A DNA stretch of 64,000 bases from Auanema rhodensis (lineage: Eukaryota > Animalia > Nematoda): positions 15,748,001 through 15,812,000 of the forward strand of contig OZ059895.1 of the NCBI GenBank assembly GCA_964057225.1, given 5' to 3'. The translations under genes and the position numbers were made by a program. The notes below the pieces were generated by a model. That model was not told the DNA's origin. It worked only from the letters and a program-made list of their open reading frames with translations, and ran no database searches. This document shows positions 10,225 to 26,490 of this stretch, in pieces. Positions within the stretch are counted from its first letter, which is position 1; each line of letters begins with the position of its first letter.

Positions 10225-13200
10225 ATGCAATATGTGGGGAAGTATTGTGTTTGTGTTTGTGTGTTGTGTTTCTCTTTTGAAAAATTTTCTTTTTTTTCAA
10301 ACTTATTCCAAATTCAAGCTTTAAGCTTTTGTTCATCAAAATATTATATTGATTATCCATTGAATGATAAAGATATTCGTGAACTAAAGTTCTATTTTGA
10401 AAAGTAAAATCAAGAATCAACACAACATGCACAAGTAATAACTAGAAAGTTCAATAATAGTTTCAAAGAATAATAAATATATTTGCCAACTCAATTGAAT
10501 TGAAGAAATTCGATCCTAATGTGAGTTTGGAAGATGCGCTCATTTCTATATTTCACACAACGAATGCTGCTCCAAATTTTTCTTTATTCAACAATAACAA
10601 GAGGTAAACTTGATTATACAACCATATTTAAAGTATAATAAATACAAAAAACTATTTTCAGCTGTCACACCAACTCATGAACTTAAAGAAGACATTATTA
10701 AGAGGGAATATGTTGCAGATATAAGACCAACCCTCAAGCCAGATGATGTGACTACCGTAATCATAGAACATGAGAAATATTTTAATAATTCCATAATAGG
10801 TTACAATTGTTCCTAACAAGTTCATTTTGCTGGTGATGGATCAACAGCAGGAAACTATTCGTTTTGCCCAGGAATTTATGATGGTTCGTTACCTTACTGT
10901 ATAAAAGGATATTAAGCTATTCCCTGCTAGACAGCAGTTTTCAGAACTAATGTTTTCTTTTGTGGGAGTAGATTTGAATTTAATATAACGACAACGTTGA
11001 ATACTACCTGTTCTTTACTTCTTATCCATTTTTTTACATCTGAAAAGAACTCAGAAAAAGAATATTTTTTTAAAACATTACAACGACTTTTGCAATATTT
11101 ATAAACTCGGTTCAATTTTCAATTATTTCTTTCCTTTTCGCAACTTTTATTGCTGATAAATTGGTCCCCCAGCATAGTCACGTATTGTCTTTGGAGCGAA
11201 TGGTTTTCATAACAATAATGATTAAAAGTTAAACATGACAAAGTATTTCTTCAACAACATCACATGAGAGCCATGTGGTAAAGTTGGGTTGCTTGATCGA
11301 TCATGTTCCGATTTCTTACCAAATGAACTTTAAATACACCGACTTTTACCAGTCCCGGCTGCGGATGTATAAAAGTTTTGCGCGACGAAAGTGCGTTTTT
11401 AGTAAGGAATGCCACTGATAAGATTTAAGAAGCTCACGTATTCAGTTAATTATTTGCTTTTTCCCATAAGCTTTTCTTTGCAAAACAATAGCAATAATTC
11501 CATTATCTAAATCTGGCAATAAACTTGACAGCATAGCAATCGTCACTGTAACCCCTTTTCTTTTTATTTTCTCCATGATACATATATTCGCCTAATTGAA
11601 ATTTGTCATGCTCTATCTTTCAATCAACACATAATCTGGGTCGAATGTCCGGCTTCCGAACTAAGATTTTGCTGATTTCAGACATGGGTAGATCCGCATC
11701 TAACATGGAATCGCAGCTCATATGGGTATGGTAGAGATTGGATAAAGATTCCTGAAACATTTGTTTGGACCCCAGACGTGATTTTTGAATCAGCGTACGT
11801 ATGAAGTACTTTGAAGAAACAAAAATTATGCGAAGAAGAAAGACAAGGAGAATATCTGTATTAAAGTGAAATAGCCGGTTTTCTCGACATTGTCTAAGCT
11901 CTCTCTTTCTCTCCCTCTCAGTCACCACCACAGTGATGCTTCAGCGAAAATTTTGATAAGAAGCGTAACTGCATTAAAAAGATAACTAATAATACAGCTT
12001 TCTTATCATATGCTTCAGAATTGATAAAACCGAGATGATACCGCTTGTTCACCGCATGATAGATTTAAAGTATGATGGAACGTTACGCCAATCGAACCCT
12101 TCTGTGGTTAGTGAAATAAAACTAAAATAAACAATATATAAATTTGTCAAAGCGTACTTAGATACATTATCATCGAAGAGTATAGATAAAAATCTTTTTG
12201 TTTTTAAAAAACTTATTTGATTGATCTCTATCACGTTTATGTAGATGGAATTGCCTTGTAATTTGCGCATCCAGGATTTTCCGTTTGATGTACAGATATG
12301 CAGCGTGAGCGTGGGTGCGAAAACTAAATAAGCTAAAGATTCGATGAACTCGGTTCAGGTTCTTGGAACTTTGACAACACAGAAATCATAATGAATACAT
12401 CATCCAGACATTTTTTGCCCGAGGAAGATCGTTTTGAGGTTTTCCACAAGATTTAGTGCTTAATCTCACAAAAGGCTGATTTCCAGGGCAATAGCGAATG
12501 GGATTTGGAGAGCATTGAAGCTATTGATGAGAAGTCCGTCGATCCATTCACAGTAATCTTTGATCTTAAGCTGTTCATGCAACAACAACTCTTTTTTTCA
12601 GAAAAAATTATACTCTTCTATAAAATATAAAATTAAATTAAAACGGAAACCGGTGTATTATGTGCTTGTCATACAGGTTTCTTTATCATTTTTTTTCTAT
12701 CAAAAAATTAACGATTTTTAGGCACCGACCTTCATAGTGTCAACCTTAACAATTTTTGGCCTTTTTACTCCATTTAGTCAGGGAAACCTAAGAAGAGAAA
12801 AGGTCCAGAATCCTCGATTAAAACAACATTGCTTTCTCATTATAGGTTACATTGGGATTGAATATGTTCGTCTCCATCTCTATGATGTTAAACCTTGTGT
12901 CTAGTATGATGCCCAAGGCCTCTCGATTGCCATTGCTAGGTTTTAAAAACAAGAGTACCATATCATATAACTTGTTTGAAGGAAATTACATATTAGCGGA
13001 AATTTTTGTATGCGGATCTGGAGTTCTTGTTTCAATTTTAATAATTACATTACATCATAGATGTCACACACGAGCACTGAACCCACCTAATTGGTAATTC
13101 ATAAGCAATCCACAAACAAACTTTAACTTACATGTTTAAAGGCTTCTCCGAATTATATTTCTACGTTGCTTCAAACAAAAGAAAAAATGCAGCAACAATA

Positions 13201-18300: not shown

Positions 18301-19891
18301 GCTATGGCTTATGAATTGGATGATACGGCCATGAATTATCTGTATCCTGCATCTAGACATTGGACTCCTTTCCAAGTATTTGTTTAGAAATCCATGTTAA
18401 ACTATGTTTTGTTTTATTATAGAAAACTCAATTGATAACCATGGCTCATCAAAATGGTAAAAACTGGAATCTCATTGCTGAAACGATGATTGATCGGAGT
18501 GCAGCCGAATGCCGATCTTATTTTATACTTTTGGATAGAAGAAGGCCCAGATTTGATTGGGATCCTAATCCTAAAGTTCTGAAGAGTTTATTTGAAGGGG
18601 AGAAAACGTACGTTCAACATGACATTTAGATATTTTTAATCTGATATCTACAGGGAAGAAACAACTATGGAGGAGGATTCGCAAGACGTCCCTGAAGATG
18701 GTGCTCAATTGTCGCAAGAACATCTCGCTGTAAAAAATGAAGAATCTCGAGAACTTTCGCCTGAAATCGTTCCTGTTCAGGCGACTTCTCCGGTAGTTGC
18801 CGATTCAAAACCGAAAGCACAGAAAACTGAAGAGCCGCAACCAGAAGTTGCCACTGAGAATTCAAAAAGCGCTTTGAATATGCCTGTTCCTGAAGCTTCC
18901 ATACCTGGTGCAGGATCTCTTACTATGGGAACTCCTATGAGGCCAGCGTCTGCTACTCTTGCCGATGGAGTTTCTTCGAAAACTCAATCAATTACTCCAA
19001 CTCTTTCACAGTCACAGCCCCAATCCAAGGCTCAAACTCCTCTACCAATTCCCATTTCTCAGGTGCTACAATCTCAAAATTCGGCACAATTGCAACTTCA
19101 AGCTCAACTTCAAGCAGCGCATGCTCAAGCTCATGCTCAAGCGCAGGCCCATGCTCAAGCTCAGGCACAAGCTCAGGCACAAGCTCAGGCACAAGCTCAG
19201 GCACAAGCTCAGGCTCAAGCTCAAGCTCAGGCTCAAGCTCAGGCTCAAGCTCAGGCTCAAACGCAGGCACAAACTCAGGCACCAAATCCCTCTCAACTAC
19301 ATACCCCAACTCAGCAGCACATTCAAACTCATTTACAAACTCAGGGTCAAGCTCAGGTTCAAACGCAGGTTCAACCGCAAGCACAGTCTCAAGCGCAAAT
19401 CCAAATTCAAAATAAGGCTCCAGCACAGACCCTACAGCATTCTCTGCAACTTGGACACCCCCTTCTCCAGGCACATCAATCACCATTTCAACAACACCTT
19501 CAAGCCCAACAACAACAACAACAGCAGCAACAGCAACCGAATGTGGTACTCACTCAACCGTCAACCATATCACAGTCCTCTGTTACTACTGCTCCTGTGT
19601 CCTCTTTACCGTCCACATCCGGATATGCTGGAATACCTGGAATTTCTTCTAACGCTCTTGCAGCTATGTTCCCCGGGGGTGTTAATGCTGCAACCCTTCA
19701 GCAATACGCTGTGAGTGATTTATATTGTTTCAATCTATATTTGTTTATTTAGACCATCTTGCAGCAAGCCGGTGGAAGTAACATTGCTCCTCAACTCCTT
19801 GGAGATTACGGAGCTTTTCTTTCTGGCGCACTTAACCACCAGCAGCAACAGCAGCAACATCAACAACAACAGCAACAACAGCAACAACAGC

Positions 19892-19923
<32 letters not shown>

Positions 19924-20553
19924 ATTAATCCTCAGGTAATTTTTTGTATTTTATTTTGTAAATTATCACTTGTTTAGGATTTATTGAGAAATTTGGATAA
20001 ATTTGGAACCCGTGATGTTAACGCTGTTCTTGCTGTTCTACAACAACAGCAGCAAGTACAACAAGCTCAGCAAGTTCAGCAAGCTGTTGCGGTTGGTTTT
20101 GTAAAGAACTTTCTTATTTATATTCTGTTTTCAGAAAGGTAATTTGAACACAAATGCCATTGTGGAGTCCATTATTGCACAGTATAGCAAGTACTCTGAT
20201 CAAGGTATATAGTGTAACATCAATTATGAAATATATGAAAGTGTTTGTTTAAGATTTGGACACAATATTCAGCAAATGTACGGATCCGACAACCAAAGTA
20301 CTTCTACAAATCGTAATGGAACGTAGAAAAACTACTGCTAATCAACTAGCTCAGCAACAATTCCAAGCCAATTCTCTACAGCAAGCCTTTTTGCAACAAC
20401 AGCAGCACCAGCAATCTGAACTTATGAAACAGCAACAAGCTGAACTTTTGAAGCAGCAACAAGCTGAACTTTTGAAACAACAAGCTGAACTCTTGAAACA
20501 ACAGCAAATTAAACAAATGCAAAAACAGCAGGAGCTGATCAAGCAACAGCAAC

Positions 20554-20587
<34 letters not shown>

Positions 20588-23051
20588 ACAACAACAACAA
20601 ATGGTATGAATTATAATTATTAGAGATTAGTAAAGGACTTTCTTCAGATTGCTCAGCAATTAAAGCAGCAACAGTTATACCAAAATATGAGAACTACTCA
20701 GATGTCTCTCAGTGCTCAAGGCCTAATCCCCCAAGTTTCTACCGCTGTTAGTACAAGTGGTGATGCACGTGCTGATATGCAAGACCTCCAGGTAGATTTA
20801 AAGGTTTTTAAGAAACTATTTAAATACTAATTAAGAAGAAGTATACTGAGTTGTTCAAACAAGCTCAACAAAACCAACAGGTTCAACAGATCCAACAAGC
20901 TCAGCAAGCTCAACAGGCTCAGCAAGCTCAACAGGCTCAAGCTCAAGCGCAGGCACAAGCTCAAGCACAGGCACAGGCACAAGCACAGGCGCAAGCACAA
21001 GCACAAGCACAAGCACAAGCACAGGCACAGGCGCAACAAGTCCAGCAAGCACAGCTTCAGCTTCGTAGCTATGTTTTACAACAACAGATGAAAGTTCAAG
21101 AAGCAACTCAATTACAAGAAGAACATGATACAGTGAGAGCTTTTTTTCTGATAATTACATAATTTTCTCTTTTTAGTTATCTAAAAAAATTGATGAAATT
21201 GCTGAAAATCTTCAGCGAATTGAAAATGACGAAAGAAGCTTAGCTGCTGCTAAAAAGGTTCTCAACCTATATATTTGATTTGTACTAAACTCTTCGATAT
21301 TAAGCAATATGAAAGCATTGCTCCATGGTCAATGTCGCCAGAATTCACTCGAGGAAAAAATGAAGTTAATGATCAAATCAAGATGCATGCTATGAATAGG
21401 CTGACAATGCAAACAAGACTCGCCGAACTAAGAAATACGTTAGTTATCTCTCTCTTTTCTATAATTTTGACTCATGTTTTTTATCAATTTTAGACGCGAA
21501 AAGGTGCGACAACGCATTGTCCAAAATAGGGCGACTTTGGAATTAGCCAGTAGCCTTTCAAGTCCCGCTGCTGCTGCTGCAGCTGTTGCAGCTACTTCAC
21601 TTTCCAGTAAAGACTTTGTTTCTAAGATGCAAGGAGCTCCAACTAATTACTCAGTAATATCTTTTGGCTGATACGATATACTCATTTTTCTCCTGATTTC
21701 AGCAATTGATGGCTCAACAACTTCAACAACAACAACAGTTTCAACAACTTATTAGCCAGAGGTTTATGCAAGAAGCTGCGAAGGTACTTTTCAATATACT
21801 AGAAAGACTGTATTGAATCTTTTCAGTCTCAACCCACTACATCTATTACAACCAAACAACATGATCATGCTAAACAGGTCAATAATATCGTAGATAAGGT
21901 GAATGCTACTGCCGTTACTTCTATGATAATTTACCCTATTTCTCTATATAGGTTTTGAACGAAGAACTCTTCGTCAACCATTCTCCAACATCATCATATA
22001 CTCAACAGCCATCTGATACTGTTAAACGAAAATCAGGATTAGAGACCATTTGCTTGCCATCAGCTCCTATCCAACATCGTCATCCTTTGACTGCTCCTGC
22101 TCAAAGAAGGATGCCTACCCCTCCTCGCACGGTTTGCCAGCATTCGGTACCTTTATCCATTTTCTATATTTCAGAACTCACGAAGTATCACTGGAACTCC
22201 ACTGACAATCTCCACATCAAATCATTCTGGCAATCATTCAGGTTCATCAACAGTTCAGGTTTACTTCCATACTCTAGATATTCAATATCAATTTGTTCTC
22301 AGAATTCACCCAGACCCTCTTTATCAAATGGTGTTCCTAATCGAAGTACCGGTCCCGTTAAGCCTCCAATTCTTACTGGCTCAGCACCTTCTGCTTCAGT
22401 AATATCATCGGCCATTTCTCACATGGTTTGTCTAAATTACTTTTAATTCTTGTAACATTTACTCTTGCTTTAGAATCGAACTGCTTCACCATTCATGATG
22501 TCTTCTCAAACAGCTACCTCTGTTTCTTCAATACCTACCTCTTCTGCTCTAGCTGGGATTTCCTCTGTTAATAGTCCAGGTTCAGCTAAATCTGTACCTA
22601 ACCAAGCTCCACCCCCTCCACCACCTCATCGTCCCACTCCTCCTCCTCCGCCGCCTTCAGCTTCGGTCCAGGAAACTAAGGTCGAATCTTCTTCACACGC
22701 TGACTTCGAACCTCTATCCCCGGATGATAGCACTTCAAATGTTGAAAATGCTGCTCCTTCGAGCTCATTAATACAAGAAAAGCAAAAAACTGCTTCTGAA
22801 GGTACTAGTTGAACTTTGCATGTCCCACAACATAGATGCCTTTTTCAGAATCTCGTGTGTTCAGTTGTTTGGATCTTGATTGGAACGGTCCACCAATTAC
22901 TGCCAATGGTGGTACCCCTTCGAATGGAAATCAAAATGTTTCAACATCTACTGCAAACCCTTTCCAAATGGTTGGACTAATGCTTCCAGTTGATCCTTCA
23001 GCTCCTACCGCACCCCCTCAATTCGAGCCTTTATCCGATGACGAGAGCTAA
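15364..23051 (+). CDS. gei-8: NCoR/SMRT-family nuclear receptor co-repressor (GEI-8-like), many exons; exact start codon uncertain
   Basis: SANT1 [44 protein letters not shown]; SANT2 ...[25 protein letters not shown]; long Q/AQ-rich region; C-terminal [10 protein letters not shown] matching the NCoR/SMRT terminal LSD motif. Confidence 0.88.
19121..21040 (+). repeat. Coding low-complexity repeats in gei-8: two (AQ)n tracts and several poly-Q tracts
   Basis: gctcaggcacaa-type repeats at ~19121-19280 and ~20900-21040; (caa/cag)n at ~19508, ~19840-19923 and ~20544-20600. Confidence 0.95.
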
Positions 23052-24014
23052 ATTTTGGTACATTTAAGCTTTTTCTTTCTTTTGGGTTATTTTTGTTTTC
23101 ATTCTCTCTGTGATATCAGTGTGTACACATGATCTCTCCATAGGTTTGCAGAGTTCTACAGTTTTTTACTCTTTTACGCTGTCAGACAATGCATAGTGTT
23201 AACACATTGTATTTATGCTGGTTCTAACCTTACTTGACCCGGTTAATCAGTAAGGTGTTATTTGTATCTCGTTGTCTTTATTTAGTGAACAGTGAATTTA
23301 GCAATTTCATGTATTGTATCAATCCCAATCTACATTATTCATCTCATTTTTAAGTGTTGTGTTCCTTGTTTATATTTTGTCTCTCAGCGTTTTCGCCAAC
23401 TTTAGTGTTCATCTTTACCAGGAATATACTATAGAAGAAGTATAAATGGTGTGCTGTAAATAATATCTGTTCTGTTTGTTACTTTCTTTCTCTCGTTTCG
23501 TCTTTTTATCGCTCTCTTTCTTCTTTTGGCTGTATGTCTATCTGTTTTTCAGTTCAATTTATGATTCGAATGACTGCAAGTTCAATCATTTTCAATTTAT
23601 TTTCTCTATTTCTAAGCTTTATGTTAGACCAGTGAACCATTTTATATCCAAGTATATCCGATCAACATTGAATTTCTTGACCCCAGTTGATATTAACGTA
23701 CTTGATGAGACTTATAAAGTTTACTAGAAAACTTATAGTATATATACATGAGTTACCACATATAAAGAGACATCAGAGCATATAATGAACAGAACTAAAC
23801 GATACGATCAATCATGTTGAAGAAAATCATGATATTTTCATTATTAATGCAACTACTATATACGATATTCCATGAGTAAACGCACAGAATCTATGTAGAA
23901 AGATAGGTGTAGGTGTAGGAAAACTTTCGTTTCATTATTATGAAATTGACTCAAGATTATACGGTTTATGGACCCCTGTATGTAATACGGGAAACCAATA
24001 TATGATCAAGTTTC

Positions 24015-24204
24015 ATTAGGTTTGTTAAGATTGAGGGGGACTGTCTTTGGCAGTTGGAGAAGAGCTGGTTAGCACTTCTCGTTGGGGTGAGGTTCTGGCC
24101 CTCGGGATTCTTCGGAGTTCCTAGGACCGAAGACTTCCAAGCCCGGAACCTCCCCCCACCGGGGAAATATGTTTAAATTTTTGGAAAAGCATCTAATTAG
24201 GTGC
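24015..24204 (+). ncRNA. Putative Sm-class snRNA-like RNA, type A (also at ~24335-24524, 24655-24844, 24975-25164, 25294-25483, 25613-25802, 25932-26121); 5' end inferred
   Basis: GC-rich stems ACTGTC/GGCAGT, GAGAAG-GCT/AGC-CTTCTC, TGGGG-GAGGTTCTGG/CCGGAACCTC-CCCCA and GGGATTC-TTCG-GAGTTCC (cUUCGg loop); single-stranded AATTTTTGG Sm site at 24176-24184; terminal hairpin GCATCT-AATT-AGGTGC. G-U pairs define the + strand. Confidence 0.65.
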
Positions 24205-26252
24205 AACAATTCTCGATTTATCATTTTGAAAACTTATTGTAAAACTTTCGTTTCATCATTATGAAATTGACTCAAGATTATACGGTTAATAGCCCCTGTA
24301 TGTAATACGGGAAACCAATATATGATCAAGTTTCATTAGGTTTGTTAAGATTGAGGGGGACTGTCTTTGGCAGTTGGAGAAGAGCTGGTTAGCACTTCTC
24401 GTTGGGGTGAGGTTCTGGCCCTCGGGATTTTTCGGAGTTCCTAGGACCGAAGACTTCCAAGCCCGGAACCTCCCCCCACCGGGGAAATATGTTTAAATTT
24501 TTGGAAAAGCATCTAATTAGGTGCAACAATTCTCGATTTATCATTTTGAAAACTTATTGTAAAACTTTCGTTTCATCATTATGAAATTGACTCAAGATTA
24601 TACGGTTAATAGCCCCTGTATGTAATACGGGAAACCAATATATGATCAAGTTTCATTAGGTTTGTTAAGATTGAGGGGGACTGTCTTTGGCAGTTGGAGA
24701 AGAGCTGGTTAGCACTTCTCGTTGGGGTGAGGTTCTGGCCCTCGGGATTCTTCGGAGTTCCTAGGACCGAAGACTTCCAAGCCCGGAACCTCCCCCCACC
24801 GGGGAAATATGTTTAAATTTTTGGAAAAGCATCTAATTAGGTGCAACAATTCTTGATTTATCATTTGAAAACTTATTGTAAAACTTTCGTTTCATCATTA
24901 TGAAATTGACTCAAGATTATACGGTTTATGGACCCCTGTATGTAATACGGGAAACCAATATATGATCAAGTTTCATTAGGTTTGTTAAGATTGAGGGGGA
25001 CTGTCTTTGGCAGTTGGAGAAGAGCTGGTTAGCACTTCTCGTTGGGGTGAGGTTCTGGCCCTCGGGATTCTTCGGAGTTCCTAGGACCGAAGACTTCCAA
25101 GCCCGGAACCTCCCCCCACCGGGGAAATATGTTTAAATTTTTGGAAAAGCATCTAATTAGGTGCAACAATTCTTGATTTATCATTTGAAAACTTATTGTA
25201 AAACTTTCGTTTCATCATTATGAAATTGACTCAAGATTATACGGTTAATAGCCCCTGTATGTAATACGGGAAACCAATATATGATCAAGTTTCATTAGGT
25301 TTGTTAAGATTGAGGGGGACTGTCTTTGGCAGTTGGAGAAGAGCTGGTTAGCACTTCTCGTTGGGGTGAGGTTCTGGCCCTCGGGATTCTTCGGAGTTCC
25401 TAGGACCGAAGACTTCCAAGCCCGGAACCTCCCCCCACCGGGGAAATATGTTTAAATTTTTGGAAAAGCATCTAATTAGGTGCAACAATTCTTGATTTAT
25501 CATTTGAAAACTTATTGTAAAACTTTCGTTTCATCATTATGAAATTGACTCAAGATTATACGGTTAATAGCCCCTGTATGTAATACGGGAAACCAATATA
25601 TGATCAAGTTTCATTAGGTTTGTTAAGATTGAGGGGGACTGTCTTTGGCAGTTGGAGAAGAGCTGGTTAGCACTTCTCGTTGGGGTGAGGTTCTGGCCCT
25701 CGGGATTCTTCGGAGTTCCTAGGACCGAAGACTTCCAAGCCCGGAACCTCCCCCCACCGGGGAAATATGTTTAAATTTTTGGAAAAGCATCTAATTAGGT
25801 GCAACAATTCTTGATTTATCATTTGAAAACTTATTGTAAAACTTTCGTTTCATCATTATGAAATTGACTCAAGATTATACGGTTAATAGCCCCTGTATGT
25901 AATACGGGAAACCAATATATGATCAAGTTTCATTAGGTTTGTTAAGATTGAGGGGGACTGTCTTTGGCAGTTGGAGAAGAGCTGGTTAGCACTTCTCGTT
26001 GGGGTGAGGTTCTGGCCCTCGGGATTTTTCGGAGTTCCTAGGACCGAAGACTTCCAAGCCCGGAACCTCCCCCCACCGGGGAAATATGTTTCAATTTTTG
26101 GAAAAGCATCTAATTAGATGCAACAATTCTCGATTTATCATTTTGAAAACTTATTGTAAAACTTTCGTTTCATCATTATGAAATTGACTCAAGATTATAC
26201 GGTTTATGGACCCCTGTATGTAATACGGGAAACCAATATATGATCAAGTTTC

Positions 26253-26415
26253 ACTCTAAATATCTTTAACTTTCCCTATATATGAGTATATTATGGGGAA
26301 GCCCAGGGATCGCCCTCAGTTGGGTGTAGGTTGCTAAGCCCCGGGGTTTTTCCTTTCCCGTGGGGGGCGCTCCCTGTGCTTCGTTTATTTTTTGGAAAAG
26401 CATCTAATTAGGTGC
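26253..26415 (+). ncRNA. Putative Sm-class snRNA-like RNA, type B (divergent 8th unit)
   Basis: Same upstream flank and same terminal hairpin; Sm-like ATTTTTTGG at 26387-26395; different body folding as TTCCCTATATAT/ATATTATGGGGAA and GAAGC-CAGGGA-CGCCCTCA/TGGGGGGCG-TCCCTG-GCTTC. Confidence 0.6.
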
Positions 26416-26490
26416 AATAATTCTTGATTTATCATTTTGAAATTAGCTTATATCATGTATATTTATTAGGTGAAACAGTATTGTAACGAG

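Follow-up and report, generated by a model that had tools for sequence, protein, structure and literature searches.

The window that we analysed is a 64,000-nt stretch of Auanema rhodensis DNA (G000:C3:15748001-15812000). It contains a tandem array whose eighth unit resembles its neighbours at both ends and differs from them in the middle, which raises the question of what kind of unit this is: the decayed edge of a repeat, one member of a modular RNA family, or a relative of a known class of small RNA gene. Eight consecutive units were aligned to compare unit 8 (type B) with units 1-7 (type A). The following features were delimited:

23920-26157, + strand: tandem array of seven type-A units of 318-321 bp, each unit a complete candidate gene (TRF and alignment).
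26158-26446, + strand: type-B unit (unit 8), with upstream and 3′ modules as in A and a different body (alignment).
26315-26352, + strand: block of about 37 nt of residual A/B homology, at the same offset from the boundary in the A body (local alignment).

TRF described the repeat with a period of 319, 7.3 copies and 98% matches, spanning 23920-26253. The first 96 bp of unit 8 are shared with A units 1 and 4 without a single difference, and the sequences diverge sharply at 26253. From the Sm site onwards unit 8 rejoins the A units, and the match (94-96% identity by BLAST) extends past the 16-nt terminal hairpin into some 30 nt of the 3′ flank. An earlier note on this DNA had described about 95 bp at the 5′ end and about 55 bp at the 3′ end of unit 8 as matching the array, and the alignment bears this out. 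Its description of the intervening 135 nt or so as very different also holds, as the ungapped A/B identity over the 77 nt after the boundary is 24/77, which is chance level. The note had further pointed to residual homology between the two bodies, and the block listed above reaches a local alignment score of 23 against 15.4 ± 2.2 in shuffles (p ~0.009). Since this block is collinear and homologous, the A and B bodies are very diverged relatives rather than unrelated inserts. The proposed start of unit 8 at 26158 was kept, whereas its end was moved from 26442 to about 26446 by homology with a second B copy. The array is intergenic, lying between a + strand gene rich in poly-Gln and Gln-Ala repeats (window 18667-23051), which ends about 870 bp before the array, and minus-strand genes further to the right.

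Whole-genome BLAST (181 Mb) with the B unit and the A body as queries found two clusters only, about 35 kb apart. Together they hold eight A copies, two intact B copies and one degenerate B copy (B′). The cluster in the window consists of seven A units followed by B; cluster 2, at C3:15736670-15737790, lies in inverted orientation with the order B′-A-B. The second intact B copy (G000:C3:15736670-15736953, minus strand) is 99% identical to unit 8. The B body thus recurs in a second cluster, again beside an A unit, in agreement with the earlier view that unit 8 is not a decayed edge repeat. The genome was also searched for other bodies that share the A/B flanks, as the note had proposed, and none was found at any locus of the 181 Mb beyond the two clusters. 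With A and B as the only bodies in the genome, there are two body types and not an open family. The idea of a fixed cassette with a variable payload therefore survives as a fixed promoter/Sm cassette around two structured bodies, and its open-ended part does not. The combination of Sm site and hairpin was also sought in a metagenome collection, one that is unlikely to hold nematode DNA, and gave no matches there. Beside cluster 2 lie a roughly 107-bp palindrome that consists of 21-bp tandem units (G000:C3:15739191-15739338), with a sequence unrelated to the A/B units, and an intron-poor open reading stretch at L003:2400-3030 that looks transposase-type by eye.

The degenerate copy of cluster 2 allows a comparison of intact and damaged units:

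L003:1503-1790 (G000:C3:15737286-15737573), minus strand: degenerate B′ copy (whole-genome BLAST).

B′ lacks the distal part of the upstream region and is thus promoter-truncated. Of its 16 differences from B within the RNA, 15 fall in the 81-nt core helix and one in the other 82 nt, and its closing helix is broken (-48.7 vs -57 kcal/mol for B). Several of the differences are multi-base changes clustered in the core, a pattern that points to partial gene conversion, or to template switching in a quasi-palindrome, more than to decay spread evenly over the copy.

The flanks themselves have a mixed history. The upstream module occurs in two haplotypes with three differing positions around 26205-26210. 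One haplotype is carried by A units 1 and 4, the A unit of cluster 2, unit 8 and B′; the other is carried by A units 2, 3, 5, 6 and 7 together with the intact B copy of cluster 2. Variants of the 3′ flank are likewise mixed between the types. Flanks are exchanged between A and B by unequal crossing-over or gene conversion, and the unalignable bodies are not. The near-invariant flanks had been read earlier as a sign of selection; because both upstream haplotypes are found with both bodies, their likeness needs no more than recombination or gene conversion, and that argument is not supported.

These observations bring in the reading that the locus is a dead or neutral relic, that is, a small satellite-like array derived from spliced-leader (SL) type genes, young and homogenised by recombination, with stems that are local inverted repeats of no function. 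The 11 copies at two nearby loci, flank identity for which recombination accounts, and a B′ copy that is visibly decaying all fit such a relic. The contrast within cluster 2 argues the other way, as its intact A and B copies have stayed 99% identical to the window copies while their truncated neighbour B′ has drifted to 92%. Taking in the promoter, Sm site and folding results given below, we regard a relic as a serious but rather unlikely explanation.

The genome is that of a rhabditid-type nematode in which U1, U2, U4, U5, U6 and SL1 genes all occur in tandem arrays. Rfam models located canonical nematode U1 genes, starting with AAACUUACCUGG, in 727-bp arrays 0.1-0.3 Mb away on the same contig, canonical SL1 genes in 252-bp arrays, and SL2 genes; SmY-like genes elsewhere in the genome score just below the Rfam threshold. 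From 24 known snRNA, SL and SmY promoters of this genome we built a position weight matrix (PWM) for the PSE, with a consensus of roughly CACCCATATGnnATACGG. In 18 of these 24 genes, 39-42 nt separate the TACG core from +1. Applied to the array, the matrix and this spacing gave three features:

26208-26229, + strand: PSE-like element of B, TACG core at 26224-26227 (24930-24951 in A unit 4; PWM).
26196-26201, + strand: second, distal ATACGG motif, 26 bp further upstream, with a poor 5′ half (PWM score -13.1).
26267-26270, + strand: predicted transcription start of B (24989-24992 in A unit 4), from the TACG-to-+1 spacing in U1, U2, U4, U5, SL1 and SL2 genes.

In every A and B unit a PSE-like match scores 8.4-8.8 bits, or 10.0 when a 1-nt deletion is allowed, and these copies rank about 10th to 21st among some 128,000 window positions on both strands. 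Their score is below that of 23 of the 24 known genes, which score 10.5-30 in leave-one-out, with SL1 at 1.4. A promoter score under that of nearly all working genes is what a relic might show. It also counts against the A/B units as functional genes, as does the ambiguity of the start that two ATACGG motifs and a TATA-like run create. The TATA-like run (AATATATGA) lies at window 26235-26243, about 30 bp before the PSE-predicted start, and recurs in every A unit; the other snRNA, SL or U6 promoters read in this genome have no such run. The top PSE-like match in the window is at 11710-11731 on the minus strand (19.1 bits, TGCG for TACG), with neither an Sm site nor an Rfam match downstream of it.

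The predicted start bears on the proposal that the units form a family of modular guide RNAs, with exchangeable bodies set in a constant expression/Sm cassette and with unpaired 5′ ends that would pair with target RNAs. The cassette-and-body layout is real, the flanks match while the bodies differ, and the multi-base changes of B′ are clustered and confined to the core, all of which would suit exchangeable bodies. The genome nevertheless offers two body types only in 181 Mb, and the predicted start falls in the wrong place for a guide that begins at the homology boundary: the PSE puts it about 15 nt downstream of the boundary, inside the proposed guide, the distal ATACGG puts it about 10 nt upstream, and neither motif puts it at the boundary itself. 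Complementarity does not help this proposal either. The longest complementary runs of A and B with U1, U2, U4, U5, U6, SL1, SL2 and SmY, and of A with B, are 5-9 nt long and not above shuffles, so that the weak A-to-B complementarity seen earlier is within chance; full-length RNAduplex runs against the snRNAs returned uninformative whole-length duplexes. We consider a guide-RNA family very improbable.

In the 3′ module the following features were delimited:

26387-26395, + strand: Sm site AUUUUUUGG (AAUUUUUGG in A units, e.g. 25136-25144), single-stranded between two stems (predicted fold).
26400-26415, + strand: terminal hairpin of 6 bp with a 4-nt loop (25149-25164 in A unit 4; predicted fold).
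26424-26435, + strand: possible 3′-box, a TGAT-type motif 9 nt after the hairpin (by eye, weak).

As in Sm-class RNAs, (A/U)AUUUUUGG is single-stranded in the predicted folds, flanked by stems and followed by a terminal hairpin. The exposure of this site between stems is not what a relic with functionless inverted repeats leads one to expect. The sole variant of the terminal hairpin, in unit 7, changes a U-G pair to U-A. The 14-nt Sm context WTTTTTGGAAAAGC occurs 20 times in the genome vs six times for the reversed control; 11 of the 20 matches are the A/B units and two are SL2 genes. The seven other matches are at C4:6273361(+), C5:8095263(-), C5:16934756(-), C6:11968198(+), C6:15791322(+), C7:13081653(+) and C8:9720685(-); about six are expected by chance, and some could be further Sm-class genes. 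A 17-nt stretch that covers the Sm site and the bases after it is identical in A/B and one SL2 gene. When the A/B 3′ module was compared with known RNAs, SL2 scored highest (z 5.5-7.4), followed by SmY4 (4.2) and SL1 (3.6), while U1, U2, U4 and U5 align poorly. The Sm domain of A and B is thus of the spliced-leader type, which makes duplication of an SL-type gene, followed by rapid divergence of its 5′ domain, the most likely origin of the family. TGAT motifs that resemble the candidate 3′-box also follow SL1, SL2 and U4 genes.

We then considered the body, for which three features of B are relevant:

26273-26299, + strand: 5′ hairpin of B, an AU-rich stem closed by CCC/GGG, with GA/GU in the loop (MFE and centroid structures).
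26300-26380, + strand: core of B, a long GC-rich closing helix around a three-way junction (predicted fold).
26347-26351, + strand: T5 run in the B body (sequence).

With the limits given in the earlier note, B folds at -59.9 kcal/mol (z -3.57), and 0 of 200 dinucleotide shuffles were as good. From the PSE-predicted start the z-score of B is -2.70, and A reaches -2.1 to -2.3 against shuffles. The claim that the divergent middle of unit 8 folds into stems, for which a comparison with shuffled controls had been proposed, is therefore supported. The minus strand has z-scores similar to those of the plus strand and is 11-13 kcal/mol less stable. Three substitutions among the A copies lie in a stem or opposite one, and each either retains a pair or creates one: C-G has become U-G in units 2 and 7, the hairpin of unit 7 has U-A for U-G, and a U.C mismatch is replaced by U-A in the A unit of cluster 2. 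Extended pairing that is kept in two different bodies, and stem substitutions that preserve or create pairs, speak against a relic; z-scores alike on both strands speak for one. These moderate z-scores, similar on the opposite strand, are also to be counted against functional genes, as is the near-identity of the copies, with A copies near-identical to each other and B copies likewise. A common A/B structure from RNAalifold was set aside; it conflicts with B's own best fold, and it draws on two independent sequences only. T5 runs are also present in A units 2 and 7. As internal T5 runs would stop Pol III, a Pol II snRNA-type gene fits best, and a Pol III gene was rejected for B on account of its internal run.

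Rfam searches of A and B, run at the gathering score and again at E<=10, yielded no matching family; all that appeared was noise from U4atac and mir-1261 below threshold. The SL1 and SL2 models (RF00198 and RF00199) find true SL genes elsewhere in the genome and no A/B unit even at E<=10. SL1 and SL2 RNA genes have a PSE-type promoter, for which A/B carry a PSE-like candidate, and share with A/B the Sm context, the tandem arrangement, a similar 3′ flank motif, and a hairpin that begins with GC directly after GGAAAAGC. Unlike them, A/B have no GGUUU-type 22-nt leader, lack the donor GU at the expected place, and have a GC-rich body 1.5-2 times longer than the SL1/SL2 RNAs. At the SL donor position A has GG, and the only candidate in B is the GA/GU in the loop of its 5′ hairpin.

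It could nevertheless be asked whether B (A is the weaker candidate) functions as a spliced-leader RNA whose leader is non-canonical, the 5′ hairpin of B being SL stem I with the GA/GU donor in the loop. B has the three-stem SL layout as well as the SL-type Sm domain, and by eye the CCC.../GU...GGG spacing of its 5′ hairpin resembles stem I of SL2. This has to be set against 5′ segments that are not significantly similar to the SL1/SL2 leaders (p 0.02-0.2), the GG of A at the donor position, the silence of both Rfam SL models, and a body far longer than in any known nematode SL RNA. A leader-donating B seems to us very improbable. Both this interpretation and that of a guide-RNA family are conceivable and lack positive support. 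The disappearance of any SL-type leader or splice donor would, for its part, be in keeping with a relic.

The 5′-splice-site-like and branch-site-like strings in the 5′ parts of A and B could alternatively mark minor-spliceosome or variant U-snRNA genes (U12, U11, U4atac-like or U1-like). A weak U4atac match of 18.8-25.6 bits, driven by the Sm site, and a local similarity of A to U1 (z 3.8) would be the points of contact. The Rfam scores are far under threshold (the U4atac cut-off is 53), canonical U1 genes are present in quantity, and the 37-nt similarity to U1 loses the pairing of U1 stem-loop II and is not significant after some 70 comparisons; RF00003 gives no match, and we rejected a U1 variant. 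We judged the local similarities of A/B to U1 and U5 to be chance. A minor-spliceosome origin founders on the lack of U12, for which the best match in the genome search has 24 bits (E 0.72), and we hold genes of this kind to be extremely unlikely here. On this sequence search U12 is absent from the genome, which fits the loss of the minor spliceosome in C. elegans.

Two further ideas were set aside. A telomerase RNA came to mind through a 7-nt permutation of the nematode telomere-repeat complement in B, which is too short, paired in the best fold and absent from A, in a gene that is multi-copy. For the piRNA upstream motif, suggested by two GTTTCA hexamers in the upstream module, the anatomy of an Sm gene explains more.

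Among nematode-specific RNAs the SmY RNAs are close analogues, although the SmY model RF01844 does not match A/B. To our knowledge, no Sm-class RNA is known from nematodes beyond spliceosomal snRNAs, SL RNAs and SmY RNAs. PMC11229312 describes SmY as nematode-specific Sm snRNAs of the trans-splicing machinery, 70-90 nt long with two stem-loops and a conserved first loop. Measured against that description, A/B are alike in being nematode Sm-class RNA candidates beyond the canonical spliceosomal set, with a PSE-like candidate for the same type of promoter and with stem-loops that flank the Sm site; they differ in their predicted 150-180 nt, three or more stems, and unrelated bodies.

Weighing this evidence, we think it on balance probable, as far as sequence can tell, that A and B are paralogous orphan genes of Sm-class snRNA type, derived from an SL-type gene and with a fast-diverging 5′ domain. 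They look like a young, species-restricted offshoot of the spliced-leader RNA genes. In such genes the PSE, about 45-60 bp upstream, would recruit the snRNA transcription machinery, and transcription would start about 40 nt past its TACG core, at about 26268 for B and about 24989 for A unit 4. The predicted RNA, some 150 nt long for B and 178 nt for A, would fold into one or more 5′ hairpins followed by an extensive GC-rich system of helices, then an unpaired Sm site and a short hairpin at the 3′ end, and an Sm ring may assemble on this RNA to form a stable nuclear particle. Recombination between units would keep the promoter and 3′ cassettes alike, with bodies too different to recombine. The copy number is tiny beside that of true snRNA arrays, which also counts against genes of this type.

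The proposed origin, duplication of an SL-type gene followed by fast divergence of the 5′ part, would parallel that of the Drosophila LU (Like-U) snRNA, which was proposed to derive from a neighbouring U5 gene by duplication and rapid divergence (PMC4053861). LU is a lineage-restricted Sm-class snRNA with an snRNA promoter that has kept only a parent-like 3′ stem-loop (PMC4053861). LU comes from one intronic gene, and its TMG cap, its binding by Sm proteins and its conservation among drosophilids have been demonstrated (PMC4053861), whereas A and B, known here from genome sequence, form short arrays with two types of body.

As to the role of such RNAs, our guess is an accessory or dispensable part in splicing or trans-splicing. 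In a bolder form of the same origin, A and B would work as two lineage-specific, SL-born Sm snRNPs with a dedicated role in trans-splicing, or B would donate a new non-canonical leader, and in either case the distinct bodies would specify different partners; this appears unlikely to us. If they are expressed and Sm-bound, A and B would show how new snRNPs arise, through SL-type duplication, a cassette kept by recombination and a new body, and would be a new particle for researchers of trans-splicing. They would then join SmY (PMC11229312) among the non-canonical Sm RNAs of nematodes. Should they be silent, the locus is no more than a gene array in decay and adds to the many snRNA-related repeats that this genome carries.

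The U6 genes of this genome were seen in passing. They form a 226-bp array (L086, G000:C1:6375382-6375483, minus strand), and, judged by the PSE spacing, the 5′ end of U6 may be several nucleotides upstream of the point where the Rfam model starts. They have no clear TATA box, unlike vertebrate and fly U6 genes, which have one.
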